Origin: Eutreptiella sp. 'Long Island Sound 2002'
Taxonomy: Eukaryota; Protista; Euglenida
Direction: 5' to 3'
DNA: 64,000 nt
Assembly (NCBI GenBank): GCA_964036045.1
Contig: OZ038378.1
Coordinates: 58,156,001 to 58,220,000, forward strand
Shown: piece by piece, positions 12,896 through 59,355 of the stretch
How positions within the stretch are numbered: position 1 is the first letter of the stretch
Layout: each line of letters opens with the position of its first letter
Program-made: the position numbers and the translations under genes
Notes under the pieces: generated by a model
What the model saw: the letters and a program-made list of their open reading frames with translations, nothing else
What the model was told of the DNA's origin: nothing
Databases searched by the model: none

Positions 12896-13063
12896 ATACG
12901 CGCGATGTGACAATATTCTACATTTCTACTTTGAGTATGCTATTTGACATATGTGACCAAAGTTGTTGGCAGAGCTGTGTGACACCCGTTGAAATACGTG
13001 TTGATGTGTTAGCCTTGTGTATCCACTTCTTCTACTGTGTTGTGTTTGACGTTTTTTTGAAGC

Positions 13064-13362
13064 TGGCCGAAACTGAGGCCAGCTTTTGGGTAATATTGCA
13101 AACAACTATGTGTATATGCAGTTTTCCACCCTTCTGGCCAAAATTTCGGCCAGCTTTTTGGTTTCCTAGTGAATAGGCATTTTTATTTTCATTTTTCTTA
13201 GGGCTGGCCGAAATTTCGGCCAGCTTTTTGGTCTGTTCACTATTCAAGCACTTCTTTTCCGGTTTTTGGTCGGTCTGGCCAAAATTTCGGCCAGTTTTTC
13301 CCATTTTTGAACATTTAAGCAATTATTTCCCCTTCAAACAGACCTGGCCGAAATTTCGGCCA
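13064..13362. repeat. Array of five 18-bp palindromes TGGCCGAAATTTCGGCCA with unique ~52-bp spacers
   Basis: Copies start at 13064, 13135, 13205, 13276 and 13345 (periods 71, 70, 71, 69). Confidence 0.92.
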
Positions 13363-13434
13363 GCTTGCAATTGTCATTGTTCATGAGTATTACAGCTTAC
13401 ACTCCTACATAACTGTTTTCTTGTCTCAGCATTA

Positions 13435-15638
13435 ATGTCTTCTGCTATTTCTGTCAATGTTGTACATGCTGCAGCTACTGGTGCTTTTGCTACTACAGCC
13501 AAAGGGCTGTTGCGAAATGCATTACGTGGTGGGACTCTGCAAAAGCTTTTGCAATTCTGCCTCATGTTGCGGAGGAATCGCAGGAGGCGGCACTCCATGA
13601 CACAGTTGAAGGCTGCCGCCACTGAGAAGAAGCCCCCACGATGGTACATGACATTTTTGTCACAGTTCCATGCCCGATACTGCCTGCTGCGTCGTATGGC
13701 CCTCCCATACTCTAACTGTGGGTCTGGTCACAACTGGGGTATTATGTCCTGCCGCCAACGCCGTAAGGTAGGAGTCCTTGGTCAGTGTAACACGAAACAG
13801 GAGTCCATTCACCATCGTGCTGGACTAGCAGCACACAACTTGTGGAACACCATGCACCGTAGGCAAGTTTGTATATGGTTTGATAACCTGAGGCGTTACA
13901 AGTCGGGAGCTGATCCCCATTCACCTGACTTAACCCTAAACTGTACAGCTGTTGCTGTTTTGCACACTACTACCCTACCTGCATACCGGGGTCTGCCGGA
14001 GCTGGCCGAAATTGAGGCCAGGGTACCAAAGGTTGGAGATGACATCTATCGGTCACATAGAGCATTGTTTGATCGTATTGATGTTGCCAACCAAGGTATT
14101 CAGAGAGTTTGGGTCGTGCTCGTTTAGATATTGCCAGAAAAAAGGTTCGTTCCCTCAACTGGAGACCCTTTTTCCTGTCCGAGCTCCGCTCCGGCACACA
14201 CAAAGAGCTTTTGCAACTCGTGGTTGATTTGTCATGTGTGGAACACCGCACTAGACACTGTGTTCCGCTGCTTGTGGACATGAAAATACACTTTGCCCTA
14301 CTTAAGCTGTGTTATGGTGCCGCTTATGTTCCGTGGAATGTACCACAACTACTGTTGGGTTTTCCTTTGGTGTACGGAGTATGGCATAGCTATAAGTAGT
14401 GTGTTGAATTGATCTACAGGGCGTTCCTGCCGTTCATTAAGTTTTTGGAGCAGGGGAATAGCCTTCAAGTTGGGTCTATCCTCCCTCGCAAGGTCAAGGT
14501 CATCCATATGGAGAAGACGTTGCTTGGACTCATGCTAGCCACATCGTCCAATAGAGGCAAGCTAGATGAGCGCGCATCTGCCCTGCTCAGTAGCCAGCGG
14601 GACTTGACACCCATTCAACGCAAGGGTTTGCGTATGTTATTAGCCCTTAAGGCTTTGCTGTACACATACTGTCGAGCTGCTTTCAGCATTGGGACTTTGG
14701 TTCGTGAGTGCAACTGGGAGGGCCGGGGGGCAGGTTCCGGGATTGTTGCTAAGCAGGCACTTGAGATGTCCCTACTGCTCATGCTGAACATCCTAAAGCC
14801 CGAGGAGCAGTTAGCCACGGAGTATGTGAAAACCACTGCTGTTGCTCTTTTGTTTTGGAGTCAGTGGCATTCTGCCTCCCTAGGGTATATCCAATCCGAG
14901 GAGCTGGGTGAGGCACTTCTGAGTCGGTTCTCAGCCCACTGTCGCCGCAACACAGCCTGTGCCAGTGTCCTACAGTCTTCTGATTTGTTTCTGACGCTTC
15001 CCCCTGTCCAACCGGGAGAGAAAGTTTTGCGTGGTGTGCTGACTGAGAGATCCGTGGCAATGTTTTCTGCCAATCTTAAACAATTCATCTTGACCGCCCA
15101 TACACAGAGCCTGCCCATATGTGTTCCCGTTCCGGACTACAAAGTTGAGGTGAGAAGACTAGATGCAGCTGAGGATCTGACTTTCCCCGGTACAATGTCT
15201 AGGACACGAATCACCACAGACCGGTTACAATCGGTTCTGTTGCATGCAATGCAAAATCTGCTTGCGCGTACCAGGGTTCGTGAGGGTGTTGAGGATTTTT
15301 TACAGACAAATGCACCCGCTCGCACTGCTGCCCAGCAAGGGGTATTGCGTACTGCACATGCTTCTATCCGCACTGCCAACCGTGCACCGCCTGCTGCTCC
15401 TGGTGGGATTGCCTTGCCCCCAAAGCCACCCCCGAAGCCCCGAGCCAGAGCCCCCCCAGTACCCCCCCCCAGCCCCCCCCCCCCCGCCCAGTACCCCCAC
15501 CCCGCCCCCGATGATTCCGTTGCCATCGACTCTTGTGATAGTGACCGGGATATTGATTGTGATGCAGACAGCGTTGCCTCCTTTGAAGCCCTAGATGAGG
15601 CAAAACACATCAGTGTGGATACCCAGGACTGGGACTGA
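13435..15638 (+). pseudogene. DDE transposase, CMC/Transib/RAG1-like, with a frameshift near 14127 and a stop near 14397
   Basis: Motifs are CIWFDN (D1), PLLVDMKIH (D2), YGVWHSYK (xxH) and IQSEELGEALLSRF (E; resembles Transib SEEAxEA). All align with the copies at 38.2-41.5 kb and 55.2-56.6 kb. Confidence 0.65.
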
Positions 15639-15731
15639 TTTCTGTTTGCAGCTGTGTTTGTCACTGTGGTATGGGTTTTGCCACGCATTGCCAGTGATTT
15701 TGGTGTTTCTATTTGCTGTTTCATGTTTTTC

Positions 15732-15888
15732 TGGCCGAAATTTCGGACACACTTGTTGTTTGGTCATATGGCTACCCCCGGAACACAAATGACATGCGGT
15801 TCTGGCCGAAGTTTCGGCCAGCCCCTCAGAATACTATTTCTGCACAGTGGTTTAGCATGCAGAGCAGTGCTGGCCGAAATTTGGGCCA
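15732..15888. repeat. Second intergenic cluster of three 18-bp palindromes
   Basis: Copies at 15732, 15803 and 15871 (periods 71, 68). Confidence 0.9.
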
Positions 15889-16007
15889 TGTTATCCGATT
15901 TTCCTGTCAGGCGGTCCGTTTTGGTCCTTTTTTGGTTGATCCGCGCTTGTTATTTGCTATTTGGGAACTCTCCCCTCATGAAATGTTGCCGTGTAGCATC
16001 TTATTTG

Positions 16008-18399
16008 ATGACTGAGCCTGGAGAGGTATCACAGGACGTGGCTGCTTCGCCACATGGTGAGCCTGCAGCAGACAATGGGCAATCTCAAGTGCAATCCCAG
16101 TCTCGAGAGGACCAGGCGAGCACAGAGGGACTTCAAAAGAAGCCTAAGGCCGCACCAAAGAAAAATTCAACATCCTCCATCAAGTTATCCAACTGGGTTA
16201 CGTCAACGACGAAAATAAAGGTTCGCTGGGACCCGATTATTATTGACCACGACCGAAAATTTGGGCAGGTCCGTAGGATATCGGATGATCGCGTGCAACG
16301 CCGCTACGACGATCTGAAGGCAGCCCCGCCTGTGGATTACATCCAGGATCTCCTTTTTTATAAAGTCACTCGTATGTGTGTTGTGGTATTCTTCTCGATG
16401 GTACCGTTTTTGTGCCTGAATTTTCGACCCTGCTGTTTCGAATATTCATGTTGCGCAGCCACTCGCTGGGTTCTGTTGGGGGGTCAGCATGTTTACACTG
16501 CTGCCCAAAAACACAAGACGGAATTTGAGATGAAAAATATGGAGACTCCGGATTGGACCCTGGTATTTGGTGGTTATGAAGTCAAACAGGACTGCCCCCT
16601 GCGGACTAGGCGCCGGCTTGCAGGCTTACATCAAATCCAGACCACTGCTGGCTCAGCATCCACCACATCGGAGCATATGTCCCTACTCCTGGATAGGCTT
16701 GAGGATGAGGATGCCAATGAGTACACCCTTTACCATCACATTACTGTTATGCTTGAAGAGTGTGGTGTTACTGCCGAGGAAGGCACTGTGGTGTGTTTCG
16801 TTTATTAATTCGGTTTCGTCGATCGACCTAGCCGAAATTTCGGCCAGCTTCTGTGTTCCACACGTTCTCCTGTGCAGACTGCTGTTGCCAAACGGTGGGT
16901 TGGCGTTGGGCGTTTGGTGAAATTTGTGGGTCTTGCTGCAGTAGACGCCATGGCAGCCATGGAGAAGCGTGGATTACATCCCGCACGGGGTACGTTCAAG
17001 GAAGTGGAAGGCATCACGCTTGACCGACTTCGCGACATCGTAGGTTACATGGATGGGACAAAAAGTACCCTACCTGATCTCAAAAAAAATTTTAAAAGAT
17101 GTTAAAAGGGCCCAGATGTGGTCCTGGCACATTCTTCATCCCGAGGCGGTTGCCAATGGGCTTGTGAACAACACCAAAGGTATGTTTTGGTCAAACAGGG
17201 GTTTGTATTCGAATAAATCGACCGACGTGGCCGAAATTTCGGTCAGCTTGTGTGTCGTTCAAGTAATGCACAATAGGAGCCCACCGCGTGATACCACCTG
17301 TCTGCAGCTACACTTGGTACTATCGAGATGGCCAAAAGGCAGTGCGCTATCGCATCACACCTGAAGGTAGCCTATGGCAGCTGGACCTCGACTGAAGAAA
17401 ACCCCTGGCCACCGTGGTCTGCAGTAATTAAGGCCCCTCTTTGGAAGGAACCCAAATATGAGGTTTGCGGGGATTGTTGCAGAAGCCTGTTGCTAAGCCT
17501 GTTTGTGAAAAATCTGATACTGGTCTGGTTAGTATCCAGTGTGCTAGGGAGTCCCTCGTGGAGACAAGCACAAGCAAACTCATTGCAGAGTCAGGGCCGT
17601 GTGGAACTGATGGCAATGCGTTGTGGAGTCCTTGTTCCCAGTATCATTAGTTCACTGCCCTTTGGTGCTTGTGTCATTGAGTTGCCCCGCCTCTATACAG
17701 CTAGCTGGTTTGCATAACCTGGTTGCGCAGGTGCTTCTGTCCGGTGTGCCTGTGTTCATTGCGGGTGCCACTGTTGCTGCTTTGAAGGCCACTGTGGCTG
17801 AGGATATGTATCAGTGTGATGTTGCAATTTACAATTTGTCAACCAAGACCCCGTTGTATACTTCCACTTCCCATCTGGTTTCCGTTTGTTGTGCCACCGC
17901 CTTTGATAACAGGATGCCCCGTTACGTGGCTTATACTGAAGGACCCATGTCGTCTGTGATGCCTGTTGAGATATTCTCGATTCTTTTGAGCCTGGTTCCG
18001 GTCCCAGAACGGGCAGGCAATTGGTTTCTGCTGGGGACTCTGTCTGTGTATTTTGCAAGCATGATGTCTACCAGGTTTTCGAAGGACTGTAATGTTGTGT
18101 GTGCCCTTTTGGGTGAGGAGACTGTTGTGCCTGATGAGTTTGTTCTGTCCATAAGAGCGGCTATCACCAACGCTGACACGTGCCCCCCCAAGTCATGGGA
18201 GGATGTGTACCATGATTTGGGGGCAGGTTTTCCTGTGGATTGTTCTGGGGTTAGGTATGTAGATGAGGATCCTGAGGAGCAAGATGGGGAGGCAGAGTCG
18301 CAATCAGAGACACACACTACAAAGAAGAAACCCAAAACTGCCCCTGCCCCCTCACCCAGTGGCACGCAGTGCGCTCAGGCCACCCCAGCTTCCTCCTGA
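16008..18399 (+). pseudogene. Multi-exon gene: ParB/Srx-like N-domain, helical region, possible degenerate DNA-methyltransferase-like C-terminal region
   Basis: GQVRRISDDRV...WVLLGGQHVYTAAQK...RRLAGLHQ resembles ParB box I (QxR) and box II (G.hR..A). GT-AG introns lie at 16372-16458, 16791-16877 and 17180-17263, with a frameshift near 17095. The C-terminal block aligns with 42956-43810. Confidence 0.5.
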
Positions 18400-18622
18400 G
18401 GCACTGTGGCCCCTACTGGCAGAGGTATGAATGCTTTTGTGAATCATTTTTTACCATCCCAGGGTGGAAACACACAATCACAGAACTCTGCCACTGCCAA
18501 GCCTTGTGCTGCAGCCCATGCCAAGCCTCCTGCCAACACAGGTGCTAAGAAGCCCCGTGCATCTGGTCAGCGCAAGCGCTAATGCCAGTCCTACTGCTCA
18601 TATTGAGTGTCAATATGAAGTC

Positions 18623-18944
18623 TGGCCGAAATTTCGGCCAGCATGCAGTCCTCAGCCTCTTCAGCCTCTTATTATTGTGTCTCCCCATAGGCACTGCAAA
18701 AGTCTGATTTGATTCGTCAGGTGGCAAGTATTTGCTTGTAATTGAGTATATTATGTTGCACACCCTGTTCAAATGTCACTGCTCCTGTGTTCCTTGCTCA
18801 TGTCTACTGTCATAGGTACCCATTTCAGTGATCATATTCGGAGTTTCGATGGACCTGGCCGAAATTTCGGCGAGCTTAGGCCTGTCTGCCAAATAGGACC
18901 ATGTGTTTGGACATTTTTCGAAGAGCTGGCCGAAATTTCGGCCA
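18623..18944. repeat. Downstream copies of the 18-bp palindrome
   Basis: Copies at 18623, 18856 and 18927; the last pair is 71 bp apart. Confidence 0.9.
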
Positions 18945-20746
18945 GGCTGGTTAAAATAGGAAATAGAAGTACATGCTTTGGGGATAGTTTTCTGTGTCCT
19001 TCGATGAAAGGTATGTTTGGGGTTCCCTTATCTGTGATGTATAGGGGGGTTCTGTGATCACCATGGAACAGAGGGGAGAGAAAAAATAGCCCCCCCCCCC
19101 CCCCCCCCGCACTGGAATGCAGTGGTCTAAATGTAAAACAACACTATATTTTGGTGATTGAATATCTTTATTTTGAAAATCTGTGTGTTTCCAGAAATGC
19201 AAATAATGGCATATATTTGAAGTACACACCTTGTTTTTGCATGTTGCCACCAGGGGGGTTTGGATACCCGAAAAATAACACCCCTTTTCACATACTTTTC
19301 CCCTCACTACAACATGGACTTCCGTGGGCCATAGCGCCAGGTGGGGAGTGGGCAACTTGTGACGCCTAAGCAATGAAGGGGAGTCACCAGAGGTTGGAGC
19401 ACATGTTGCGCTACAGCCTGGTGCCCAAGCCTCCTGTAGCTGAAGCTAGTTGTGCAAGTGGTGATGTAAAACCACACCATGATGATTCTGTGACACCAAA
19501 CGGGTGGGATGTAACGTGGAGGGCGCAATTGGGGAGGGGCCCACGCTTTTAGGAAGCTAGGCCGGGCGTGCCACGGCACGCTTTCTAAGCAAAACGGACC
19601 ACCGTGGAACCCTTGAAAGGCGGCTCCGATGTTGCAAGTGAGGAATATGAAGATGGATGGTGAACGATCGCGTTGGTTGCTTGTGGGACAGGGTGCCTAT
19701 CGCGGACTAGGGGGGCGGGCGTTTTGGCGGCGGTGGGTGTGAATGACAACTAAATTGACATGAATGCGTACCTAATTAGTATTTCGTTCACGGGGATCAT
19801 TTCTACTACAATGTTGGCGAGGTAATTTTACCGTTTTGCGCATCATTTGGACATGGTGGGTTCGTTGGAGGTTTGTTCTCTGCTCGATGATGTGGAGCGA
19901 AATAATGGCGAGAGTTGAAGACCTCAACATGCTACGTATCAAGCCAAAAACATTGATTTCTCTTGGTAATTCCCAGTTGCGGCACTCTCACATGAGCTAG
20001 AGTTGCCCATTTCAATGGCCCCTTAACCCCCGTTTAGAAAGGGTACCCGTACGCTACAAGCGGGGAGTGGCCCTTTGCAACCGGGGGCCAGCAAGGCCCT
20101 GGGGCGGGGTGGCGAGGGGTGGGTGCGGGGGGAGTTGCGTTCAGGTATGCGAGGTTCTGGTGTTGGGCGTTGTGGTATGGGAGTTTAGGGCTGTGGGTCA
20201 AAATGCCTCCCATAATCCCCCCCCCCCCCGCACCCCAACCGCACACTTGAGCAAACGCTTAAAGTGCGGGCTCGAGGCTGTTTTCATATGCTTAATTTTT
20301 GAAGGGGTGCAAAAAATATTTCCAGGTTAATATCAAACGTTAATTTTCATATTTGGAACGCCGGTCCAAAAGTTAAATGTCAACCTCCACGTATTAAACC
20401 AAGTAGTCGAAAAATTAACCTTAAAAAATGGGGGTAGTGTGGGCGTTTTGTGTTTGCGCTTGTCCTGTCCGGATGTCTGAGGTGTCATGCAAGGGTGTGT
20501 GCCCTAGTGGCCTAGATTAAAGTCAATATGTTTAATATTTGGCCAAAAATTAACACGTTAATCTCAAGTTTCAATTTTTGTAGGGGGGGTTAGGGGGTTT
20601 GCCGTGAAAATTATGACCCCCATGGGTTGCCTTATAGGCTTGGGTGTCATTTCCCCCCAAGGGTTGGTCGGGGGGTCCTACCCATATGGTTGTTTCAAAA
20701 TGTTAAAATGGCTCTCGGCTTTAATTTTTGTTTTTAATTTTTTCAA

Positions 20747-20897
20747 CATGTTCTCGCGTCCGTCCATGGGGCAATCCAGATTCACAGGCATGAAGCAGGA
20801 GATGGCGTGCTTCAGCCCAACGGTTTGCAACTCCAGCGGCACATCCCGATGCCAAAGTTGTGGCTGATCCGACGTTGCCCGGACAAACCTCACACCC
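20747..20897 (-). pseudogene. N-terminal half of a PhyH-type 2OG-Fe(II) dioxygenase domain (displaced by inversion)
   Basis: Translates as RFVRATSDQPQLWHRDVPLELQTVGLKHAISCFMPVNLDCPMDGRENML (HxD motif) and joins in frame to 21214 when the inversion is undone. Confidence 0.75.
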
Positions 20898-21213
20898 CCA
20901 CAAACGAAGCGTCTAACCCCCCCAACGCAAACCCTACCACCGAACCCACTAACCCAAATAATCCCACCAACCCCACTAACCCCCCATCCGGACCCGCGAA
21001 GATGTGGGACCCCACTACGGGGTCCCATGAGGTATGAGGGCCCGGATAGGGACCCAATGGGCTACAATGGCCATGGACAACATACATAAGCACACACATG
21101 ATGCATTACATGTTGCGTTGTGCCATTGTTAGGAGGGTTAATATTTGGGGAAATGAGCTTGTAGTTGTGAGATTAATATCAATGTCGGGGACATTTTAAT
21201 TTTTAACTTTTTG

Positions 21214-22755: not shown

Positions 22756-22759
22756 GTGG

Positions 22760-24480
22760 CATTCTTCTTGCCCGCCGCCCGGGCCTCTTCCCGGTGCCGC
22801 TCGGCCTCCTCGGGGCTGGGGAAGAGGAGGGAGCGGCTCACCTCGTAGAGGGTGGTGCCGCCCGGGTATTCCACCCAAACGGCACCGTACTTCCGCCTGT
22901 GGATACCACGGACGGTGCCCCTCTCTCCCCCGTTGGGGTAGGGTACGTGGACGACCGTCCCGACGATCGGATCCCCGGGACGGTCGTCCTTCTTCTCGGC
23001 ACCCTTGGAGGTGTCGGTCTTGGTGGGGGCGGGGAGGTTTGCGGTGGCGGTCTTGGGGGGGTTGGTGGGTTTGGGGGCGGGGACGGCCTTCGTAGGGCGT
23101 GCGGTGGTGGTGGTCGGGGGGGTTTGGGCTTTTTGGGCCGGGGGATCGCCCCGTCGTCGCTTTCGTCCGACGACTTGAAAGAAAACTTTCGTTTCTTGGG
23201 GGCGGGTTTGGGGGGATTGGGCTTCGCTTGGGGGGGGGGGGGGGTGGTGGTGGACGCCTCCCCCCCTCTTCCCCCTCGCTCACCCCGCCCCCTCCCATGC
23301 TCCCCCACATCTCCTCATCCTCCCCCCCCGCATACCCCACCTCCTGCATGCGAGCCCACTCCCTGGGCCGCAAGTGGCGCGGCGACACCCATACGCCGCT
23401 CACCATGCGCGATGTCACCCAGTCGTGGAGACCGCGCAAGAGAGCAAGGCCCAGGGGTGGATCCCGGGCCACAATGCGATGGAGGGGCCCCAAGCGTACT
23501 TCTTGGGAGGCCTCGGCGTCTCGCCAGGCCACCCGAATGGGCCTTGCATTCGTTGCGTTGACCACGACGTCGATGACCTGAAAAAAAATGAAAAAAAAGT
23601 ATGAATTTTTTTCCGGCAACTTTTTTAATTTTTCGACCTTAATATTAACTCTTAATTTTTAATATTTCGACCGGCGGTGCAAAAACTAGATATTAATCTC
23701 GAACAATTAACCGTGGCGACCTAAAAATTAATGCAGGCAGCCAAGCAACATACCTCGAAACTCCCGTTGGTGCCGCCTGCCTGCACTGCCCCCATGGCCT
23801 CCCGGCAGAGAGAGGCGGCACTGGGGGCCTCCACAAGGGCCACAGGGGCTCCCGCGCTGGCCATCGGGGCCGCCTGGGCCGCCGGTTTGGCCACGTTCAC
23901 GGCCACCGCGGCCGCCTTGACCGCGCGGGACTGGGAGACCAAGCCCTCGTACGAGGGCAGGCACCCCGGGTCGTAGATGGGGCGGGGTAGGTCCGGGACA
24001 GTGGCGCAGTCCACCCCGAACGACACCACCTTGCCCTGGCGCCACTGCCTGACCCAGCCAAGCTGGGCCCAGTGCTGCAGCAGCACCAAGTAATGCGGCG
24101 TCCCATAACGGACGCCGCGAGGGTCAAAAAGCAAAATCAGTGCGGGCAAAGCGCCCGCACTGATTGCCTTTGGCATGGGGGCAAGGTGGGCACCAAGGAG
24201 GGGTTTCCAGAACAGACCCCCCCCCTTGGAGGCATCTATACCCCAGGTGCCTCTGTGTTCTCCCTCCTTCCGGCGAATCAAACACCGGACTAACCTCCGA
24301 AAATCCACATGACTGTCATGTGGCTATGCGGGGGGACGAAAAAACTGGTTGGTCCCCCGCGCACCCCTGCTCCAGCACTTGGGGTGACCGGGGGATCGGC
24401 TCCGCCTTCCGGGTGGTGGCAGACTGGGGGCCCGGGGCTTTGAGAAGCCACTAGGGGAGGGGGGGGGGTGATTGGGGGGG
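22760..24480 (-). CDS. Second gene of element C1: unknown protein with Pro-rich linkers and two possible Tudor/SH3-like beta-barrels
   Basis: Conserved with the C2 copy. An in-frame GT-AG intron lies at 23578-23753 (FE|VIDVVVN). Some homopolymer frameshifts are present and the start is uncertain. Confidence 0.5.
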
Positions 24481-24675
24481 GGTCAACAACCTCAACTCCA
24501 TCCCCGTCCCCGTCCCCGTCCACCTCGTCCACCACCACTTCCCCCTCCCCCTCTTCCTTAACCCCCCCCCCCCAGGCTGGCCTGTACCCCCCCTTGCCTC
24601 TGGCTCCTCTCCCTCTCTCTCCTCTCGCTGTTCTCCTTCTTCTTTTTCTTCTTCTCCTTCCTCTCCTTTTTTCGC

Positions 24676-27027: not shown

Positions 27028-27309
27028 GGTGGTGTGGAGGGGGGGGGGATGCGGGCAACCGGAGGGGGGGTGTCCAACACACCCACCAACACAACATTGG
27101 AACCTCTCTACTATACCGTTGTGCAACAATATACCACGTACCACCCCTTATAGGTCCGCATATGTGAATGGAAAAATGTGTACAAATGGCCCAATTGCAA
27201 AAATTTGACTTTAACCTCTTAATATTTGCGAGATTAATATATTAACGCCTTCATATATTAAAAATTAAAATTAGTATATTGACTTCAATCTAGGTCACTA
27301 GGGTGCGGT

Positions 27310-28620: not shown

Positions 28621-28732
28621 TAGGGCAAGAGGAGGATAGAGGAAGGAGGTCAGAGGGATGTGTGTGTGAGGCGATAGGTGTGTTGGGTTGCCAATATCAT
28701 TGGCCGTATGTGTGTGTGTGTGTGTGTGTGTA

Positions 28733-30600: not shown

Positions 30601-31615
30601 GCGGCGTAGAAGGCAACAGTGAACATGCACGTCCGTGCGCACAGAGGAGACCCCTTGACGTAAGACTTCCACCTTTCATGAGCCCAAAACGAGCAACACA
30701 ATGACCCCTTGCCTAACCTTCAAACTCCAATGTATGTGCCATTCGTGATGTACACATGTGTGATCTATTTTGTGTGGTCGTTGCTCTACCAGTGTTCCAA
30801 CAACTTGTACAAGTGGTGTTTAGGTGCTATTCCGACGAACGCTTTTTTTGAAACCAAACTTTTTTGCGTGGAAATGCACCAAACAACAAACATGAAACTA
30901 TTCGCGAAATGCTTATGGGCTGGCAAATAACACCTTCTGCTATCATGTTTGAATGGACTTCGTTCACGGTAAACGGAGGTCGAAGTATTTTACTTGATCG
31001 CCGGAACAAGACCACCCTAAAGACCGTAGGGTTCGGCTGCTTACTGGGGTCTTGTAAAGATTACGTCAACTTACCCCATCCCTAGTTGAACTACCGGGAT
31101 CTAGTAGGGCCTCATGTCCCGCCACTACTTCCGTCACCACCGCCACCACCCGTGCCACCAACACTAGGGGCAACACTCAGAAGGTACCCTACTCACCTAG
31201 ATTAAACCCAATATATTTAATATTTGGCCAAAAAATAACACGTTAATCTCAAGTTTCAATTTTTTTAGGCGGGGTTAGGGGGTTTGCCGTGAAAATTATG
31301 ACCCCCATGGGTTGCCTTACGGGCTTGGGTGTCATTTCCCCCTAGGGGTTGGTGGGGGGGGTCCTACCCATGTGGTTGTTTCAAAATGTTAAAATGGCTC
31401 TCGGCTTTAATTTTTGTTTTTAATTTTTCCATTAATATTTGAAAAGTTAAAAATTAAAGCCGTCGCGGGCATTAATATTATTTCACAAATATTAACTCAT
31501 TTTCCCAAATATTAACACTCCTAACAATGGCACAACGCAACATGTAATGCATCATGTGTGTGTATATGTATGTTGTCCATGGCCATTGTGGCCCATTGGG
31601 TCCCTATCCGGGCCC

Positions 31616-33490: not shown

Positions 33491-33668
33491 CATCCCCGTC
33501 CCCGTCCCCGTCCCCCTCGGCCACCACCACTTCCCCCTCCCCCTCATCCTTAACCCCCCCCCCCAGGCTGGCCTGTACCCCCCCCCCTGCCCCTGGCTCC
33601 TCTCCCTCTCTCTCCTCTCCCTCTTCTCCTTCTTGTTTTTCTTCTTCTCCTTCTTCTCCTTTTCCCGC

Positions 33669-36017: not shown

Positions 36018-38201
36018 GGTGGCCGGGGGGGGGGGGAGAATGCGGGCCACCGGGGGGAGGGTGTCCAAGACACCCAGCAACACAACATTGGAACCTCTTT
36101 ACTATACCGCTGTGCAACAATATACCACGTACCACCCCTTATAGGTCCTCATGTGTGCATGGAAAAATGTGTACAAATGGCCCAATCGCAAAAATTTGAC
36201 TTTTAACCTCTTAATATTTGCGAGATTAATATATTAACGCCTTCATATATTAAAAATTAAGATTAACCATCTTGACTTTAATCTAGGTCACCGGGGTAAA
36301 ATGATGTGCCGGCTGCTCATATTGGCTAGCAAGATTAGGAGGGGAGGCTTTTTTTCAACCAAGTGGAGGTAGGGTAGCCTCCTTGATTTGCAGGGCTTGG
36401 CCTTAGTCCTTGTGTGTTCCTTCCCCCTGCTTTGCCTCCTTAACCCCTTCTTTCGTCCCCGGCTTGTGTTTCGTAACCCCCACCTTTGTCATCCCGATTG
36501 TCCCCGCGTTCTCCGTCATCCCAGTTGTCGCTGTCAGTGTTTGCACTTTGGCTTCCTGCTTGGCCAGCTTCATCTCCGCTGCCTCCTCACTATTAAGTAG
36601 CAAAACCCGCTCCATCTCATACCACTCTCTAAGAGCGTTCTACCCCTTCCCCTTCTTTTCGTGAAACATGTAGCAACACGTAAAATGGTCCCTTGTTGCT
36701 CACCCACCTTCGACACCGGGTCGTCCTCTTCTCACGACGCACCACTTGTCCCCCTCCCCCACTTTACCCGCGATGGGGAGGCCGCCACTTGTCCTCCTTC
36801 CCTTTCTCCTTCTCCATCGCCTTTGCCGTCCTCTTTCCTGACTTCATCCTCTTCTCTGCGTCCAGCTTTGGTCTCCTCGTATGTACCACATCGTCGGATT
36901 CCCAGTCCTTCGACTGTTACTGAGAAATGAGCCGCGTTAGGGTTGCGGTAGGAAGCTATGGAGTGGAATTCTGGTTGGGCAAAGAATTGGAATGGGGGCT
37001 GGGGCTAGCGAAATAGGTTCTCAAGAGCCGTTCTACATGCCGGCTAATTATAAAACGCGCACTTGCACTTAGATTGTCTGTAGACAAACTATTAGAAAAT
37101 AGTTGGCAAGAACGATGAAGCATATACATTCTAGCCGGCGACCGTTCAAACAAGGCGTTAAGTTTCCTATCGCGCGGAGGAACTCGTCCAAGGCACATTG
37201 CCGCGGATTGAAATGCCCTCTTCTTCCCATGCCGTGTTGGACACCAAGTGACCTTCGACATGGGGCTAATTCGCTACTGAGGATGACGGTGACGGGGGAA
37301 GGGCTGGTGGGGGTTTGTGGGGGGCACGTACCCAAAGCTTCGTTACCCGGTTATGGCATCGCAAAGCTGGCCATGGTAGCTGGGGCACAGTGCGATGGAC
37401 ATATTGTTACGCATATATTGCATTGGAGCGAATGTCTCAACACATCTCAACAATTTTACATTTAGTGTTCTAATCAAACTGACGTAGACACCTACAAGTA
37501 TATTTTAATGCAAAGTTGGCCTGTTGCGCTCTGCAGAGCGCTCCAAACCCTGTCTGTACGAGTCGGCCCGTCATTTCTTTCAATTCCTATTCCATTCACT
37601 CTGGAGAACGCAAATCTGGCCGAAGAACTATTTTGCAATACATTTTTTTGGTTGATGAAATTATGTATGGATTGTCATTGGGTTTTCGACAGTCGTATGG
37701 GACAGTACATGGCTGGAGGGGACACCAGGAGCTATAAGGTGACAAGGTATGGTACATTTACATTTTGTGACATGTATGTGTGGTTCCCCTAATTGTTAGT
37801 ACGATTCAATGTCCTGTACCAAAGAGTAGTACAACCATTCTTCACCAGTTGCCCGTGTTCCGCTCTGCAGAGCGCAAATTCTTACAACGGCATGAAACTT
37901 GGTGCTTTTTCTAAGTTTGCCGACTGGAGCGCTCTGCAGAGCGCATTTAACGTGATATGCTCAATGGAGATCCCTGTTTTTGGTTGTTCCGCATTGTTTG
38001 CGCTCTGCGGAGCGCAAAGTTTCCTACTGTCCTTGTTTTGGTAGCACAAATGTACTTGTTGTTCAACGATTTAACGTGGCATGTATCGCCGCAACGTTAC
38101 TTGACCGGTGTCCCTTCATTTAGTTTGTTTTCAGGCTTGTTCGTGCCATGGATGCCTCACTGCTCCGCGCCTTCTTGTAGGAGCGAGAATACAGTTCAGG
38201 T

Positions 38202-41200
38202 TTGGATGTAATGCAGCATGCTTGTTCCCATGGTGGTTATGCCTTGCAGTTCGTTGAATTTTTTATGGCACTGAGGGCTGATCAACATCATTACCGAACT
38301 TTTGGAGACGTTCAACAGATGTTGATAGTTATGAAGGTAACGGGTAAAGGTTTGCCTTGGTTTAATCAATTGTGCCAGGTGTCATACAATCTTTATTTGT
38401 TATTGCATAAGCAATGGAAACCCCGTACCAAGCGTAGTTCTGCTGAGGCTGACGTTCCCATCTCTCGTGCAGCACGCCGTAAATTATCCTATACTGGTTT
38501 ATGTTTGTACGGTGCCCCCACTTTTTCACAGCAGGCCGCTGATGTTGCTGCTCAGCGTTCAGACGAGCTTTCTAGTTCACCTTGTGTTGTGTGGTATGAC
38601 AACCGGTACAGGAAACATTGGTTACCCACCTCATCTGGTGCCAATGCATCCTTGAACTACTGTGTATTTGCAATTGTGCCGCTGCGACCCGAACATGATA
38701 TTTTTCCACGATACCCTCAACTGGGTAGTTTGTCTTCCAAAACAGGGGACATAGCGACATCGGTTTTTCAAATCATAACACAATGCTTGCTAACTTGGAC
38801 AATGCACTAAACGGCTCCCTTGCACTATGAGATGCAAGGTGCCCCTTAGATGTGAAACGCAAAGGGGTTGAGAGTTTGCAGTGGAAACCCCTTCTGCTTT
38901 CCCCACTGCTCACTGGCACCCAATGCGATCGAGCGCGAATTTTGAAGTTTGTGGCCAGTCTGCAACAGAAGTCCAACCGGGTTCTGCCTATGTTGCCCAA
39001 TACACGGGGGGGGGGGGATTTCGTGGTGGAAGAAACGGTGTCTGGAAAAATTTACTACGGCCAATTCTAGCGCAATTTTCCCCATCATTTTTAACGATTG
39101 TGGCACAATTTTCCCATACTTTTTTTTGGACATCAAGTTCAAAATTTGTACCCTGTCCGGGGGGGGGGGGTATGATCGGGGGAGGGGAGTGCAGAATGAA
39201 ATACGTCATGTGGATGTATGGTCTGGTTCGATTCTGTGTCGTCTGCTGTGGATACTGCTGCAATCAACACAGGGTTGTATCCTTCAGGGCACTTCAGGCT
39301 GCCTACCACATGTAGTTGCCAGTTAATAGTGAGCGCAGTGTCAACTGACACTGTGTTCTCTGTAGGTCGCTGTTCGGCAAAGGCAGCTGCAGCCGAGTAC
39401 CTGGATGAAGACGTCCACATTCTGTTGCACAACTTTTTCCCGACCGAACCCTGCACCTGTACCTCCGCCTTGACAGCCTCCAATGCAACGTTTTTTGGTG
39501 AACTCCTCTTTGGTGCAGTCATCTGATGTTCAGCGAGACCTAGAGAGGGCTGCACAAGCTGTCAAGGCCAAGCAAGCGTAGCGCAAATCCAAGAATGTTG
39601 ACAAGAAGGACAAATATTGGCTAAAATGGGGCGATGCTGAGAGGCGTGAGTGTGATGACATTGATTTCAAACGGGACATGAAAGGCATACGATGAACAGT
39701 GCACCACTGTCTTGTTGAAAAATGGATTTTCCCGATTCCGGGAACTTGCTTCGAACCAGCCACCACATTGCGTCCCTGTGGTGTGCCAGCTGGGGTGGCG
39801 CGCTTGCTTGTCGATGAGGTCAAACGTTCAGTGGCTGCCACGGAGCGTCCTCCTAGTACCACCCTTCCGCTGTCCAAGAAACGGCGGATTTGAGTTTTTT
39901 TGTTTTGAGTGGCGCCCATGATTATCTGTGTCTGTAGGTACAGCTGGGGCAATAATGTATTTGATAGATGTTGTCACTCTTTTGCTGGCAATCTGTTTTC
40001 TGTGAACTGCCCGACAATGTTTCAAGAAAAATAGTGGGGGGCCACAGCAGAAAATACCCAAAAGCAATTGCAAAAGGATGAAGAGCAAGGCCCAAGGACT
40101 CCTAAGTTGGGAGTTGCGACCAGGGTCAGCGGCTGGGCGCAATCAGTAATTTGGATGCCACTTGCAGTGCAGGGAACTGCGTGGACCTGAGCAAACTAGA
40201 CCCTCATCACATCTTTTCCTCAAGTGGTGTCCCCCTCAATAAGGAGAGCCGACCTTAGGCCTTGCCCTTCACCATGGAAAAGGGCGTCGCAATTTTGCCC
40301 ATCACTTTTAACGATTGTGGCAGAATTTTTCCCCCGCGGAATTTTTCCGGGCAGAATTTTTCCTATACTAAAATCCCCCCCCCCCTGTATGAAGATTTCT
40401 TACAGTGTGGCAAAAATGTTGTACTCTAGTACATGTGACGTCTACAAGCTTCATAATGTTATCCGTTACTGTCCTATGGTGTATGGTGTTTGGCATGCGT
40501 ACAAGTACTGCTGTGAAGCACTGTATCGCAAATTCTTCTCTCTATGTACCTTTTCGTCATCTAGTCCACAAGGTGCTCATACGGACGTTTACACACACCC
40601 CAAGCTGATTTGGAAGGAAAGGCTGTTCATGAGTCTGTTACTCGTTGCCCCCCAATACTTGCAACAGTTGAAACAAAAACTTTGCGCTCTGCAGAGCGCT
40701 CCAGTCGGCAGTAGGTTGGTACTGCAACAACAGTGTTCGCAACAAACAGAGGCAATGTTCAACTTGTTGAATGATTACGTTCCCAGTTTGTTTATTTTGG
40801 GTATGCTAGTCCGTGATTGCAACTGGTGTACGGCGCGAAGAGTTCAAGTGCCTCACCCAGCACAATTGTTGTGGAATATGTCTATGCTGGTTGTATTGCG
40901 ATTGTTTGATGGTTCCGAGGGTTGACACAAATATCTCAAAACCTTGGCAGTAGCAAAACTGTTGTGAGTTCCATGGCATGGTACAGCCTCCCCCAGTACG
41001 CACAACGAGGAACCTCGTGAGGCCATGCTCTCTCGGTTTGCTGAGAAGTTGCGGCAATTCCCATCCACCTCGTGCAAACTCGAGGGGACCATTGACCTTT
41101 TCCTGCTGGTTGCCCCGGCCGCGGGGGGTAAAAAAGATTTGCCGAAAAGCAGGCTTTAGTAGCGCGTTGTAGATGCCATTCGGATGCACCTTTCAATGTT

Positions 41201-41540
41201 TGTGCGGGATGCGGACCGTGTCCCCCATCCAGCTGTGCAATGGTCATCTGCTCCTCAGGTGAAGGTGGTGGGTGCCTGGCCGGAGTCCATGGCTCTCCCG
41301 GGATCACTGGGGGATCGCTTTTCAACCCAACGGCTGCAAGATTTTCTGGTGAAAACATTACACACATTTGCAGGTGCTGTGGATGTGAACAATAAAACTG
41401 TAGATGTGCTTAATTTATTGTGTCCACGGTATACTCATCGGGAAATAGCCGCGGCCAAGGCAGAAATGGATCACAACTTTAGGCAGAACCCCCTCCCACA
41501 ACGATACCACTGGCGTCGACCCCCCCCCCTCCTCAGCCCC
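38202..41540 (+). pseudogene. DDE transposase of element B, interrupted by a TIR element
   Basis: VVWYDN, KGVESLQWKPLLLS, MLPN|MKISY, YGVWHAYK and NEEPREAMLSRF align with the element A transposase. Confidence 0.65.
39003..40387. mobile_element. 1385-bp TA-TSD TIR element inserted in the element B transposase
   Basis: TA|CACGGGGGGGGGGGGATTT ... AAATCCCCCCCCCCCTG|TA. Removing it and one TA restores the frame (CCC AAT ATG AAG ATT). Confidence 0.85.
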
Positions 41541-41559
41541 TGCTGCACCACCTGCCCCC

Positions 41560-43810
41560 CCTGTTGGCGGGAGTACGAAAGTGAGGAGTTGAAGCAAGAT
41601 GAAAAAGTAGCCTTGATGGCTGCGCTACGAAAGGCTGGCCAGATCCGTGGACCCGAGAAATCGGTATACTGCCTGTCCCCATCAAAATAGTGGCGTTGGT
41701 GAATTTGCGCTCTGCAGAGCGCTTCGACTGCATGTGTCCTAAATATGATGGTAGTTATTGAGGTCTCGTACTTATCGCGCCCTGGAGAGCGCAAATCTGG
41801 AAACCCCCTTCGTTTTTGGGTGTCAGGAGAACCTGTGGAAAGCCTGGAGACCCCTGCAGCGCCTGGTGGTAGCAACGGAGAACGGATGTGAGGATGGGCT
41901 GAAGAATTTCCCGAAAGTCTACAAGGAAGGTAATGTCCTGCCGCTCAATGTGTCCCAGGGTCACAAAACACGTCACCAACGGTCCTGTATACCATTGTTA
42001 GTGCCTGCAGGGATTACCTGTACCACCCTTCGCCCTATATTGGGCCTGGATGCGGACCACTGCCAAGAGATCATCCACTACATGGCATCGGACAAGGCAT
42101 TGTTACATGGGTTCAACAAATCATGCCGGAGACTGAAGCATGACCGCAACTGGGAGTACGTGTACCTCCATCCAGAGAATACCATGATCCACGAAACTCA
42201 AAGTATGCCTGCTCTCAAATCCTGCCCGTTAAGCAACCGTGCCATCCTCTTGTGCTCTGCAGAGCGTAAAACTTCCTGTACCACCAAATCAGCCATTAAA
42301 TTTCGACCTGTGCATCAATTTGCGCTTTGCAGAGCGTAAAATTTCCTGTACCACCAACTGCTACATTAAACGTGCAGAGCGCATCGCTACCGAAATGTCA
42401 CTTGAACCCCCTGTGTGGATTTGTTTATGCGCCCTCCCAGGAAAACCAGAGGAACTGGCACGTGTACGGAAGCTGATGACCAGAAATACAGCAATTAAGT
42501 CGAATTTTGGCAAGTGGGTCCGGTCAGCGAATTCCGAGTATCCTCCTTGGTCTGTTGTGGAGAAGTGTAAGCTGTGGGCAAGTGAGGAGTGGTGTTCCTT
42601 CCGACTGGCTCTATCAAAGCCGCAAGTGATACCAAAGGTGGGCATCAGTGGAGAGAAGCTGGCAATGCTGACGTTGAACGAGATGGGTGCATCACCATCA
42701 CTTCTGGAGACGACTGAGGCGGGCGACGCGAATGACGCCATGGGAGAAATGAGGATCTTCTCATTGGGTGGTACCAGGGGCGTGCCAGCTGGCGACGCAG
42801 ACCCTCCTTTTGCTGCGGTATGCACTGCCATAGCACAATTCTTTGTCTCGATGTCTCGATGTCCAAATTTAGTTTGACCCCCCCCCACGGGGGCCTGTTG
42901 CCTGTCTGCCCCCCCCCCGCACTGCCTCACCCACTCCTGGTCCCTCCCCGTACCCATGCAGATCCTTGTGGAGCTTGAGGATGAGTACATGGGTGAGGTT
43001 CATCCCTTATTGGACACAATATTGGGCAAGGAGGTCCCCATAGCTATTGTGGGTCGTGGCAAGGCGCTGAAGTTCTTCATCGACCAATTGCGTGGGCTGG
43101 ATAGCTGCGATGGCTGGCAATTGGTCTCAACTACTACCTACGATAAGACTACTGGCACTCCTATTATGCGGATGGTGGAGAGAACGGTGCATTTTGGAAT
43201 CCCCCATAAGTTAGGCATAAAGGTACCCAGTTTTTTTTTATATGATCCAAGCGAGTACAAGGCACCCCTCCCACTCCCTGTTGTTGGTTGGTTCCTGAAG
43301 GCTCTGAGGGTTGTGCCCAGGCATACACAACCTTCCGAGGAATCTGCTTGGATTCTGGCTGGCACGTCTAATGTTACGATGCCCTGTCACCTCTTCAGAT
43401 GCCTGACGGAATCAACTTGTGTTGTGGTCGCATACACAGGCAAGTATGCTGACAAGCCTGAGTTCGTGAGCCAGCTAGGGACCACCATAGCACATATGGA
43501 CTGTTTTTGCATTGTGGAATGGCTGGAGTGGTTCCATTGCATCGATGAGGGATGTTTGTGTGAGGCAGCCAAGGCACAGCCCCCAGAAGAGGAGAATTCT
43601 GAGGATGAAATTGAGCAGGTCGATGTCCTCGATGCACCTGCTGATGATCTAGTGGCCAGCAAGCGCAAGACCTCAGGTGGCGATCCTCGTCCCCCAAAAG
43701 AAGAAAAACACCGAACACCTCTCAGACACCCGATGCCACTTCTGCCATGGATGCTTTTGGCCGCAAAAGCCAAGCAAGCGAAGCCATCAGCAAAGAAGGG
43801 CAAGAACTGA
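41560..43810 (+). pseudogene. Second gene of element B (ParB-like region plus possible methyltransferase-like C-terminal region)
   Basis: GQIR and PFVFGCQENLWKA correspond to GQVR and WVLLGGQHVYTAA in A. The C-terminal block PLPVVGWFL...SAWILAGTSNV...CVVVAYTG...PEFV aligns with PVEIFSILL...GNWFLLGTLSV...CNVVCALLG...DEFV. Confidence 0.5.
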
Positions 43811-46325
43811 ATTCTCTGAGCCCTTTTTGATGCGTGCATGTTATATGGTTTCAATTTTTTTGCGCTCTGCAGAGCGCAAATTTTGCAACTTGTACGTTTT
43901 TGGGCCTGCTACTGTGCCTGTTCGTACGAGAAGTGCTTCCTGCTTGCGTCACGTTTTTGAATCCGGCCTTTGGGGGTCCATCCTTGTCGCATTGCAATTG
44001 ACACCACTGATACGGTGTAATGCATTTCTATCAGAAGCATTGGTGTCTTTGTCTATTTGAAAACGTACCCGCAGAAATTCTCAATCTTGCTTTGTATGTT
44101 TCATGTGTGACATACATGCACATCATCAGAAAACCGTTTGTTTCGTCTTTTGTAGGTGGCTCATTTTCAAGTCGGAGTATGCAAAGAAAAGGCGCAAAAC
44201 CTACAAAAAGTGGTTGTTGGAATCACCAGTAAAAATGTCGTTGACCAACATCACCAATTTTGGGGTTGAAAAACAGCATTTTGAAACGGTGGTCCCATGC
44301 GCCCCGGGAGTGCTATGCCCGTGACCTAAAGAGTCGGCTAAGACCCTAGGCCCTCAACGGACCTCCCCACAGTTCGCCCCGGGCGCCGCTGTCCCCCGGT
44401 GGCAAACGTGCACGCGCCGCTGGTAGTAGGGGGTGCACCTTTGATTTGGTGCACCTCCGCATACAACTGTCAACGGACAATCGTCTCGTGCTTCCTCAAC
44501 AGCACCGGCTTGTGGGGACGGACAACATTAGGAACAGTCATGTCCATGGTTGTGGCGTACCTTGCTTGAACATCCCTTGAGGCTGGCCATTCCCTTCCAC
44601 GGCTTGTGGCTCGTTTGTTCCTTGGGTCACTTGCAGAAAATTGTTTTTGATGTGCGCATCCCCGGTCCGTTGCGTTGCTTCTCTTTTCCAACTACGCGCG
44701 CTGCTGGCCCCCATGGGACAAATTTCACGCTGCACTTCTCCTGGGCGTTGGACATGCGCCAGCCCACACACTATGGCACTACAAACCACAGCAGCCAACG
44801 CCACACCCCTGCATGCGACAGACCTGGAAACCAGCCCTCAACAAACCACAACGCCTAACACAACACCCCCACATACCAAAGCTCTGGAACCCCCCCCCAC
44901 ACACAACACCATACACCACAACACTAGAAATCACACCCTGAAACCAAAGCCCGAAACATCACACCCCCACACACCACAGCCCCAGAAACCACATCCACAC
45001 AAACCACAACCCACGCACCACTGGCCCACACACCACAGCCTTGATAACCACCCACCCCCACAGCACAGCCGTGCGAACCCCCCCCCTCTCCCCACAACAC
45101 ATCCTCAGACACCACATCACCAAACATCACCACCCTACACACCACAATGTGAAGGGGGGGGTGGGCCAATAAAGTTGGAACTAGCCCCTATGTTTGCTTT
45201 GTGGCAATGTGCAAACCATAGCCTACAAGCAAGAGATGAACACACACACACATACCCACACATACATACCTACAACCTTATCCTCTGTCCCATCGTGAAT
45301 CTTCATTTTCATCATCCTTTAAAAGTTTGCACAAAGAATGGGCCATACCCTCCCAAACCCAAACCACAAGGAGAAGGGGGGGGGGGGGCAGCAATGTGGC
45401 CATGGAGGACAAGCATGAGTACAAAAACTTGGTGCGCGGGTAAATGTTTTCTTGTTATGCATTTATAGGGAACTCAGGTACGGTTAATTTTTGCAGAAAA
45501 ACATTTTATTTGTACGAGGTTAATGTTAACGTCGGCGACACATTAATTTTTGGTATTTCAAATTTTAATGAAAAATTAAAATCAAAGATGAAACCCGAGG
45601 ACCATTTTAATTTTTTTTTCCAAAGAAACAGGTGAGACCCCCCCGCACCCGATGCCGTAAAGCACCCCATGGGGGTAGAGATTTTCCCGTCGAAACCACT
45701 CAACCCCCCTGCATCCAACGACAAAGTCAAATGCAGCATTGTGCATTTTGGCATCAAGTCGTGTGTTGGGGTGTGACACGAAACCCTGCTACCGATGGAC
45801 GTCCGGACATGCTCTCCAAAATTGACACATTGGGAGGGGTGGATTGGCTGTCGCCGTCGTAGTGGTAGCCCTACAGACCAGTGTTAGACCCGATACTTTT
45901 ACTATTTGGTCAAATATTATTGCGCTAACCCAAAGTTGACCCTTATGGGGGGGAGTGTTTCCCATTTGTGGGCTAGCCATGCAACCCATGGAAATTCGCA
46001 CAGGGCATATTGATGTCCATGTTCTGCACGAGTGCCGTCACACCACCTCTTAGAACTGCAATCTTCGTTGTGTCACTCTCTAAGTCTTGCGGCACATGGT
46101 TTGCAAGGTGTGATGATGCAAAATCATATACCGGGCACTTGCGCACCATCAGCGACAATATCCACAGCTCCTACAGCCCCCACGTCCAGGGCATTTGGAC
46201 TCGCGTACTACCATGCTTCCAAAGAGTCCATCTACTCAATAACACAATCGAGCCTTGGGTGCGTAACTACTTCAGCATTTTCATGGTCAACAACGTAGGA
46301 GATGCACAACAACCCATCTAATATG

Positions 46326-59229: not shown

Positions 59230-59355
59230 CCCAACACTATCCTTGAACCCAACCTTGACTCTAACACCCACCCCAACCCTCAGCCTACTCCTAACCCTAC
59301 CCCCAAACCTCACCCGTGACCCCAACCCTAACCCTCGCACTAACCCTAACCCTAA
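59230..59355 (+). repeat. Degenerate interstitial telomere-like (CCCTAA)n tract
   Basis: CCCCAACCCTAACCCT...TAACCCTAACCCTAA; a second tract lies at about 60510-60560. Confidence 0.7.

Follow-up and report, generated by a model that had tools for sequence, protein, structure and literature searches.

Two homologous transposons and their limits

The 64,000-bp stretch of Eutreptiella sp. 'Long Island Sound 2002' contig OZ038378.1 analyzed here (positions 58,156,001 to 58,220,000 of the forward strand, hereafter the window) includes two transposons, named A and B, each of which carries its own palindrome repeated at intervals of about 70 bp. As an initial annotation had proposed, A and B are homologous two-gene elements: no similarity is found between them at the DNA level, and collinear protein blocks are found in both genes. 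They represent diverged and defective members of a single superfamily of cut-and-paste transposons with two genes, and we put the chances at about even that the palindromes are binding sites of a dimeric protein encoded by the element itself. The main features of element A are the following.

12857..19371, plus strand: element A, a complete but defective two-gene transposon with terminal inverted repeats (TIRs), delimited by comparison with a second copy (locus L004)
12854-12856 and 19372-19374: target-site duplications (TSDs), AAT
12857..12880, plus strand: left TIR, 24 bp, GCTTGGGCGTCACAAGTTGCCCAC; the right TIR is at 19348-19371
13435..15638, plus strand: gene 1, putative transposase, frame broken, recognized by homology to the intact protein P0093
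16008..18399, plus strand: gene 2, accessory, with frames and splice sites read from the sequence

The limits of A, initially placed at 12.9 and 19.0 kb, were corrected by comparing two independent copies, those in the window and at L004. The segment L004:4421-10958 is collinear with window positions 12855-19370 at 93.7% over 6554 bp, and the flanks of the two copies diverge exactly at the ends of the TIRs. The 24-bp TIR (GCTTRGGCGTCACAAGTTGCCCAC, with termini reading GCTTRGGCG...) forms an inverted repeat that is 93% complementary, and the TSD is 3 bp long, AAT in the window copy and TAT in L004. Since the TIRs and the palindrome of A are unrelated in sequence, the element could accommodate a second DNA-binding specificity. 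In a DNA sequencing run of the source organism, contig depth summed over A is 3e4 to 1.5e5, and many contigs of that run join the two ends of A across internal deletions, so that the ends are retained in the derivatives. Element A represents a cut-and-paste family of very high abundance that includes non-autonomous derivatives.

Both copies in the window, A and B, are defective. Gene 1 of A is 92-94% identical to the intact 722-amino acid open reading frame (ORF) P0093, whose cluster comprises 267 sequences at 90% identity. The frame shifts near 14113, and a stop codon interrupts it at 14397-14399, a position occupied by tyrosine in B and in the intact copies. The stop is a substitution, and the frame changes (near 14113 in gene 1 and near 17082, within an A-run in exon 3 of gene 2) could be homopolymer or assembly errors.

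Element B has the following structure.

37526..43903, plus strand: element B, an old defective copy, its right end placed near 43903 by a drop in depth
38163..41690, plus strand: gene 1, homologous to the transposase and divided into two segments (38163-38995 and 40389-41690), recognized by tblastn and profile matches
39004..40388: unrelated high-copy transposon with G-run TIRs, nested in the transposase gene and bounded by a 49-nt inverted repeat
41836..43810, plus strand: gene 2, homologous to gene 2 of A from exon 3 on

The right limit of B, formerly given as 44.3 kb, was moved to near 43903: the depth drops past ~43900, and the adjacent box, GCAACTTGTACG, resembles the TIR of A. On the left side there is a TIR-like box at 37840-37852, yet the palindromes at 37526 and 37596 lie further left. 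An inverted repeat in B pairs 37844-37878 with 43859-43893, and brute-force inverted-repeat matching between the flanks of B gave nothing at 16/20 matches. The depth over B is 200-900 versus ~40 for a perfectly matching contig; B therefore belongs to a low-copy family, the copies of which differ from each other by 5-15%. The B transposase shows 28% identity to P0093 over 365 amino acids (tblastn, E 5e-29). The transposon nested in it is missing from other B copies, in which the joints are 38993>40391 and 38995>40388. This 1.4-kb insert has TIRs that open with 11-12 G, reaches a depth of up to 15000, far above that of B, and shows many internal-deletion joints.

The correspondence between the second genes was traced block by block. 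Through the homologue P0220, which links exons 2-3 of A with B 42010-42210, B 41836-42210 corresponds to A exon 3; the PPW block at B 42494-42709 has counterparts in A and in the related families C and D described below; and the C-terminal gene-2 ORFs of A and B are collinear (20% identity, E 0.049). B retains the middle and the C-terminal portion of gene 2. The region from the stop of the B transposase to the exon-3 equivalent measures only 145 bp and holds two palindromes, and contigs of other B copies, 88% identical, are collinear across it. An exact look-up of six B ORFs in the protein collection found none of them.

Phased palindromes of A and B

The palindromes are distributed as follows (start positions unless a span is given).

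13064, 13135, 13205, 13276 and 13345 (span 13064..13362): A, 5' subterminal array of five palindromes, spacing 71, 70, 71, 69 bp
14003: A, degenerate palindrome within the transposase coding sequence
15732..15888: A, intergenic array of three palindromes in the gene 1/gene 2 spacer, spacing 71, 68 bp
16413 (degenerate), 16829 and 17228: A, one palindrome in each of introns 1-3 of gene 2
18623, 18856 and 18927 (span 18623..18944): A, 3' palindromes downstream of gene 2, the last two 71 bp apart
37526, 37596 (degenerate), 37860, 37929 and 38000 (span 37526..38015): B, 5' palindromes, spacing 70 bp in the first pair and 69, 71 bp in the remaining three
40684: B, palindrome inside the transposase gene, read in frame
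41707 and 41777: B, intergenic pair, 70 bp apart
42252 and 42322: B, pair 70 bp apart, located between two conserved blocks of gene 2
43862..43877: B, 3' terminal palindrome, perfect over 22 bp, TTTGCGCTCTGCAGAGCGCAAA

Motif A, TGGCCGAAATTTCGGCCA, has 13 matches with up to 2 mismatches in the 64-kb window, where 0 are expected, all of them between 13135 and 18944; the degenerate copy at 13064, with 3 mismatches, brings the total to 14. Motif B, GCGCTCTGCAGAGCGC, has 10 such matches versus 0.01 expected, all within 37526-43877, and a copy with 4 mismatches at 37596 makes 11. The counts originally reported, 14 and about 11, are thus reproduced when the degenerate copies are included. Among perfect palindromes of at least 12 bp in the window these two motifs are far ahead in repetition, and several copies are perfect over 20-22 bp. 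Each motif is confined to its own element: neither has a match elsewhere in the window, nor was either found in ~70 kb from seven other loci except for motif A in the A copy L004, in which it occupies the same relative positions as in the window. The abundance outside the elements that the initial annotation had named as evidence against its proposal was not observed in the window or at these loci.

All distances of less than 150 bp between neighboring palindromes, in A as in B, are 68-71 bp and agree exactly with those listed earlier. The 5' array of A, whose arrangement is also present in L004, is detected by Tandem Repeats Finder (TRF) as a tandem repeat of period 70, and the layout of palindromes in B follows the same plan as in A. 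Family D shows no interruption at the place where gene 2 of B holds the pair at 42252 and 42322.

Other short arrays based on palindromes are present in the window: GAAATTCGTACGAATTTC, TAGGCGAATTTTTGCCTA-like and TTTTTGGCCCAAAAA, at 28989-29071, 7056-7125 and 60168-60218, respectively. Private palindromes may be common among the transposons of this genome.

Palindromes in related families

Related families were recovered as loci fetched through diverged proteins, namely L001 (C), L002 (D), L003 (E), L005 (G) and L006. Their motifs compare with that of A as follows.

Family A, window: half-site CTGGCCGAAA, full site CTGGCCGAAA followed by TTTCGGCCAG; spacing 68-71 bp
Family C, L001: motif TGGGCGAAATTTCGCCCA, half-site TTGGGCGAAA; spacing 70, 69 bp
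Family E, L003: motif CTGGACGAAATTTC.., half-site CTGGACGAAA; spacing 69 bp
Family G, L005, from another sample: motif AGACCCGAAATTTCGGGTCT, 9 copies, half-site AGACCCGAAA; spacing 67, 68, 75, 67, 136 bp
Family D, L002: motif YWATCGAAATTTCGATWR, 18 copies, half-site CWATCGAAA; spacing irregular, 25-64 bp
Unnamed family, L006, from another organism: a ParB-like ORF flanked by TTTCGCATATGCGAAA on either side

Families A, C, D, E and G share the core CGAAATTTCG (halves CGAAA and TTTCG), around which the arms change symmetrically, as would be predicted by dimer recognition; the core is kept while the spacers are unalignable across families. The number of half-site changes rises as the identity of the ParB domain encoded by gene 2 (see below) falls: one change between A and E (60% identity), two between A and C (53%) and three between A and D (31%). 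The identity is 36% between A and G, and ~30% for L006, the motif of which is unrelated. This trend fits recognition by a dimer with drifting specificity. The initial annotation had also proposed that the spacing is conserved while the sequence turns over, and this is the case for A, B, C, E and G, in which the spacing is 67-75 bp; the departure of family D is taken up below.

Two further families or variants were noted at these loci. At L001:329-4080, directly upstream of the family-C element, lies a family F element with a transposase gene and then a ParB-like gene; it shows no abundant palindrome, only TGCTGGNNCCAGCA three times. In family E an insertion between exons 1 and 2 of gene 2 (L003:10714-13644) encodes a 976-amino acid ORF with a weak match to MULE (PF10551).

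The arrays could have arisen as a by-product of tandem duplication, minisatellite-like, of a ~70-bp hairpin or cruciform unit that is read by no protein and whose palindrome persists for structural or replication-slippage reasons. The TRF repeat has 77% matches, the spacers being similar as well as the palindromes, and the number of units in an array varies, as seen in a 45-bp indel among B copies and in the seven or more units at L005, all of which agree with such an origin. Also in line with it, the palindromes show no excess of conservation over other non-coding DNA when the two A copies are compared (94.4% versus 92.9%, p 0.5, not significant), a test that is uninformative because decay after insertion is neutral. 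Evidence against a duplication by-product comes from the single isolated palindromes in coding sequence, introns and the 3' region, the retention of the core and symmetric arms across families whose spacers cannot be aligned, and the occurrence of the same spacing in B with an unrelated palindrome. We consider this origin very unlikely.

Gene 2 of element A

The structure of gene 2, on the plus strand, is the following.

16008-16371: exon 1
16372-16458: intron 1
16459-~16788: exon 2
16789-16877: intron 2 (introns 1 and 2 are 87-89 nt long)
~16878-17179: exon 3
17307 onward: exon 4
16185..16757: ParB/Srx-fold domain and following helices, residues ~60-250 of the ORF read through intron 1
17623-18399: C-terminal ORF

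Introns 1-3 have GT-AG borders, with GTATGT donors at introns 1 and 3. The intron-1 segment is absent from the homologues P0181 and P0214, and many homologous ORFs stop at the same 'G..VC' border of exon 2. In introns 1 and 2 the palindrome lies near the center; a ~60%-identical subfamily (P0026-P0035) has an intact palindrome in intron 1, where that of A is degenerate. Palindrome units may arise or persist as short introns.

That most copies lie in transcribed non-coding parts, with one palindrome in each of introns 1-3, would suit a reading in which no element protein is involved and the palindromes are recognized by a host factor, or act as intron or untranslated-region RNA hairpins that affect splicing or small-RNA silencing. 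A motif peculiar to each family fits a reader encoded by the element better than a common host factor, and against an action at the RNA level stand the stems of merely 8-10 bp, the position of the 5' array upstream of gene 1, and the lack of any match (0) in an Rfam scan of the window. We attach little probability to this reading, and both it and the origin by tandem duplication are less likely than an element-encoded reader.

An exhaustive HMMER search yielded 83 homologues of gene 2, mostly ORF fragments, from this genome and other metagenomes. They follow the pattern ..GQVR..(D/E)..V......PP......Y.L.GGQH...A.......P.W..........TRR.LAG.H. Sequence searches of the PDB with gene 2, either as a single sequence or as a profile of 31 sequences, gave no ParB, only chance matches to eL39, and for this reason the fold had to come from structure prediction. 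An AlphaFold2 (AF2) model built with the alignment of homologues as input had a mean predicted local distance difference test score (pLDDT) of 78.7, with 86-98 in the domain. In a VIA structure search it matched Myxococcus xanthus ParB (7bnk_A) with Z 10.0, 95 residues being aligned at a root mean square deviation of 2.4 A. The top 30 matches were all ParB, Noc, KorB, PadC, pNOB8-ParB, Srx (sulfiredoxin) or serine kinase, the next having Z 3.6, and Foldseek against PDB and Swiss-Prot was likewise led by ParB and Noc (probability 0.96-1.0). The model helices 198-251 align with the start of the DNA-binding regions of KorB and pNOB8 ParB at Z ~8. Gene 2 of A thus carries an N-terminal domain of the ParB/Srx fold.

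With a profile of this domain, A was matched at E 2e-60, and E values of 1e-10 to 1e-38 were obtained for families C, D, E and F; in B the profile found nothing. The initial claim that each element has a ParB-like gene consequently stands for A and fails for B, in which gene 2 starts at the equivalent of exon 3. Two scans of metagenomes of the Joint Genome Institute, one with the ParB-domain profile and one with the DNA pattern of the B array, were empty.

No further activity was recognized in gene 2. None of the gene-2 pieces, whether from A or from B, matched a methylase model of Pfam at E<=10, and a 'degenerate methyltransferase' suggested earlier is unsupported, the C-terminal ORFs having neither a Pfam match nor a usable one in a language-model search. 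The latter search, with the A and B C-terminal ORFs, gave no credible match (scores 0.44 and 0.72) that would indicate a 2-oxoglutarate (2OG) oxygenase, and Pfam gave no match to that enzyme. No ORF has a Pfam match to ParA or another ATPase, the element consisting of two genes.

The transposase as a possible alternative reader

Gene 1 encodes a putative DDE-type transposase that fits no catalogued family. No credible Pfam family was found for the large ORF pieces of A and B, six full-length transposases, 10 gene-2 homologues or 22 aligned transposases, and among the 22 transposase family members there were no matches to a transposase model at E<=10. In a language-model protein search with the transposase, DUF6589 (PF20231) accounted for 69 of the 100 nearest clusters (top score 0.93, 178 shared features), and the Pfam hidden Markov model for DUF6589 gave no match. 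The AF2 model has pLDDT 53 and a disordered catalytic core; it includes a helical N-terminal domain, residues 7-89, with pLDDT 63-85. A wide VIA search with the model returned only helical noise (Z<6). The label 'CMC/Transib-like' was not adopted in view of these pLDDT and Z values.

At 55206-56511 there is a third piece of transposase, truncated, which belongs to the same superfamily and shows 64-70% identity to proteins of family C. It begins at about residue 190, has no palindromes around it, and is followed by a long C-run at 56525-56572.

The main rival to a gene-2 reader is that the transposase itself binds the palindromes through its N-terminal helical domain, as in Ac, P and Mutator, and that the ParB-like protein has another task, nucleotide-dependent or related to chromatin. 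All families that bear palindromes, B with no ParB domain among them, have a homologue of the transposase, and the arrays are located at both ends of the element and are kept in the internal-deletion derivatives; the helical domain in the model points the same way. Binding of the ends by a transposase, on the other hand, needs no palindromes far from the ends, such as those in the gene spacer and the gene-2 introns, and perfect dyads of 20-22 bp are more typical of dimeric helix-turn-helix (HTH) regulators than of transposase end sites. In addition, ParB-like ORFs on short contigs from other samples (L005 and L006) are flanked or followed by palindromes of their own. Binding by the transposase is possible, in our opinion, if on the unlikely side.

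A putative dimeric reader encoded by gene 2

According to the interpretation that we prefer, the family-specific perfect palindromes of 18-22 bp would most likely be cis-acting sites of a dimeric DNA-binding protein encoded by the element. The best candidate in A, C, D, E and G would be the product of gene 2, whose N-terminal ParB/Srx fold and following helices are like those of the palindrome-binding dimers ParB, Noc and KorB. By occupying the subterminal arrays, the intergenic spacer and the introns, it could mark the DNA of the element as its own. The bound protein could assist in pairing the ends, a role that TnpA has in En/Spm, and could also regulate or protect expression, in the manner of KorB on RK2 or of VANC in VANDAL elements. 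The structure of the elements, the fold, the private palindromes with their ~70-bp spacing and the symmetric turnover of the motif between families are shown by the data; which protein reads the palindromes, and to what effect, we infer.

Several observations weigh against this interpretation. B has 11 palindromes at the same spacing and no detected ParB/Srx domain, so that the reader may reside in the part of gene 2 shared by A and B or in the transposase; if gene 2 does read the palindromes, this suggests that it does so with a part situated downstream of the ParB/Srx domain. The AF2 model covers exons 1-2 only, and sequence searches of Pfam and the PDB with gene 2 did not return the ParB HTH. 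At the position of the GERRxRA box A has GGQHVYTAA, and 30 homologues have [GA]GQH.., the arginines being gone. The structure prediction that the initial annotation had called for thus returned the ParB/Srx fold in A together with a GERR box that reads GGQH[V/I], and gene 2 of A is not a canonical ParB. No spliced RNA was found for the introns of A, the metatranscriptome contigs being unspliced and possibly DNA. Family D, with 18 copies, lacks the ~70-bp spacing. Finally, palindromes track the gene-2 protein in their divergence, as anticipated, but common descent leads to the same expectation with any binder.

A more elaborate version holds that the specificity of the dimeric protein for its private palindrome shifted repeatedly by symmetric changes at half-site positions -6 to -9. 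The ~70-bp spacing, about seven helical turns, is retained in five families whose spacers are unrelated, even where the palindrome is unrelated too, and would in this version reflect a coat on the element in the form of an ordered nucleoprotein filament or wrap. We regard this version as rather doubtful. If it were true, each transposon family could distinguish its own copies from those of related families, and the elements would include a eukaryotic counterpart, devoid of the CTP box, of the partition and regulatory complexes of ParB and KorB, serving in self-recognition or in escape from silencing. If the binding hypothesis is wrong, A and B are ordinary transposons with subterminal repeats.

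Relationship to known systems

The idea of a self-binding ParB-like transposon protein is already in print (Petroll et al. 2025, bioRxiv 10.1101/2025.02.11.637652). PAG3, an accessory gene of red-algal Plavaka elements, encodes a ParB-like N-terminus (best structural match 7BNR) and a 2OG oxygenase, and is also associated with Zisupton, Fanzor and MULE elements (bioRxiv 10.1101/2025.02.11.637652). It is adjoined by tandem inverted-repeat arrays, and its product is proposed to bind and modify the element that encodes it (bioRxiv 10.1101/2025.02.11.637652; Curr Biol doi 10.1016/j.cub.2025.04.044). Gene 2 shares with PAG3 its status as an accessory gene of a DNA transposon, the ParB-like N-terminus with a match to M. 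xanthus ParB (7BNR/7BNK) and the arrays of inverted repeats. However, the PAG3 elements measure 17-19 kb and have four genes, while those described here have 6.5 kb and two genes, a transposase with no EnSpm or Plavaka Pfam match, palindromes spread through the element ~70 bp apart, and a host of another eukaryotic lineage.

A second group comprises Sola1-1_Ec32 of Ectocarpus, with an accessory gene that combines ParB-like and DNA-methyltransferase parts (PMC12477816, where green and red algal cases are also cited), and the ParB-HTH/Dam fusions of chlorophytes and chytrids (PMC12477816; PMC4738411). In these as in A, a eukaryotic transposon carries a ParB-like module thought to bind and modify its own DNA; unlike Sola1, gene 2 of A and B has no detected methyltransferase domain, and the superfamily and gene orientation differ.

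The likeness to the bacterial systems ParB-parS, Noc-NBS and KorB-OB (of RK2) lies in the N-terminal fold (Z 8-10) and in the multiple copies of short perfect palindromes. As between parS and NBS, specificity would change through a few symmetric base positions and, as with KorB, whose operators are distributed over its replicon and in part located at promoters, the sites are scattered. Unlike bacterial ParB, the protein has the box GGQH[V/I]Y[T/E]AA in place of GERRxRA, no ParA partner, no HTH sequence match and a different C-terminal region, and there are many sites at fixed spacing here versus few sites followed by spreading. With TnpA of En/Spm, which binds subterminal 12-bp motifs, and VANC of VANDAL the resemblance is that of an element of two genes; in those systems an accessory protein, and not the transposase, binds family-specific motifs repeated close to both ends and counters silencing. 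This is a functional analogy only, with no relation in sequence or fold, and the motifs here are perfect palindromes that are also found internally. The 3-bp TSD is as in CACTA elements, while the termini (GCTTRGGCG...) and the absence of an EnSpm-type transposase match are not.

What is new is the compact two-gene element with an uncatalogued transposase, the conserved ~70-bp spacing, the graded symmetric variants of the palindrome and the sister family with no detected ParB domain. The way in which transposons distinguish themselves and escape silencing is understood in few cases, such as TnpA and VANC, and ParB-like cargo together with inverted-repeat arrays has only recently been noticed in algal transposons. 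The families provide a natural specificity series of at least five related palindromes (1-4 symmetric changes), one unrelated palindrome and one family devoid of the ParB domain, and the compact size of 6.5 kb makes both the binding hypothesis and the ~70-bp spacing directly testable.

Other features of the window

A 4.5-kb direct duplication, GC-rich (~59%) and with 92% identity between its copies at 22759-27304 and 31770-36297, is probably made of two copies of another large element. Shorter pieces that match it are found at 20499-21211 and 31184-31768, one of them inverted, and a candidate dioxygenase/RAG1-like gene named in the initial annotation adjoins it. Interstitial telomere-like repeats, (ACCCTA)n and TAGCCC/TAACCC, are located at 59270-59355 and 60510-60560, and an 85-bp satellite with 15 copies of ~67% identity occupies 62721-63998, reaching the end of the window.

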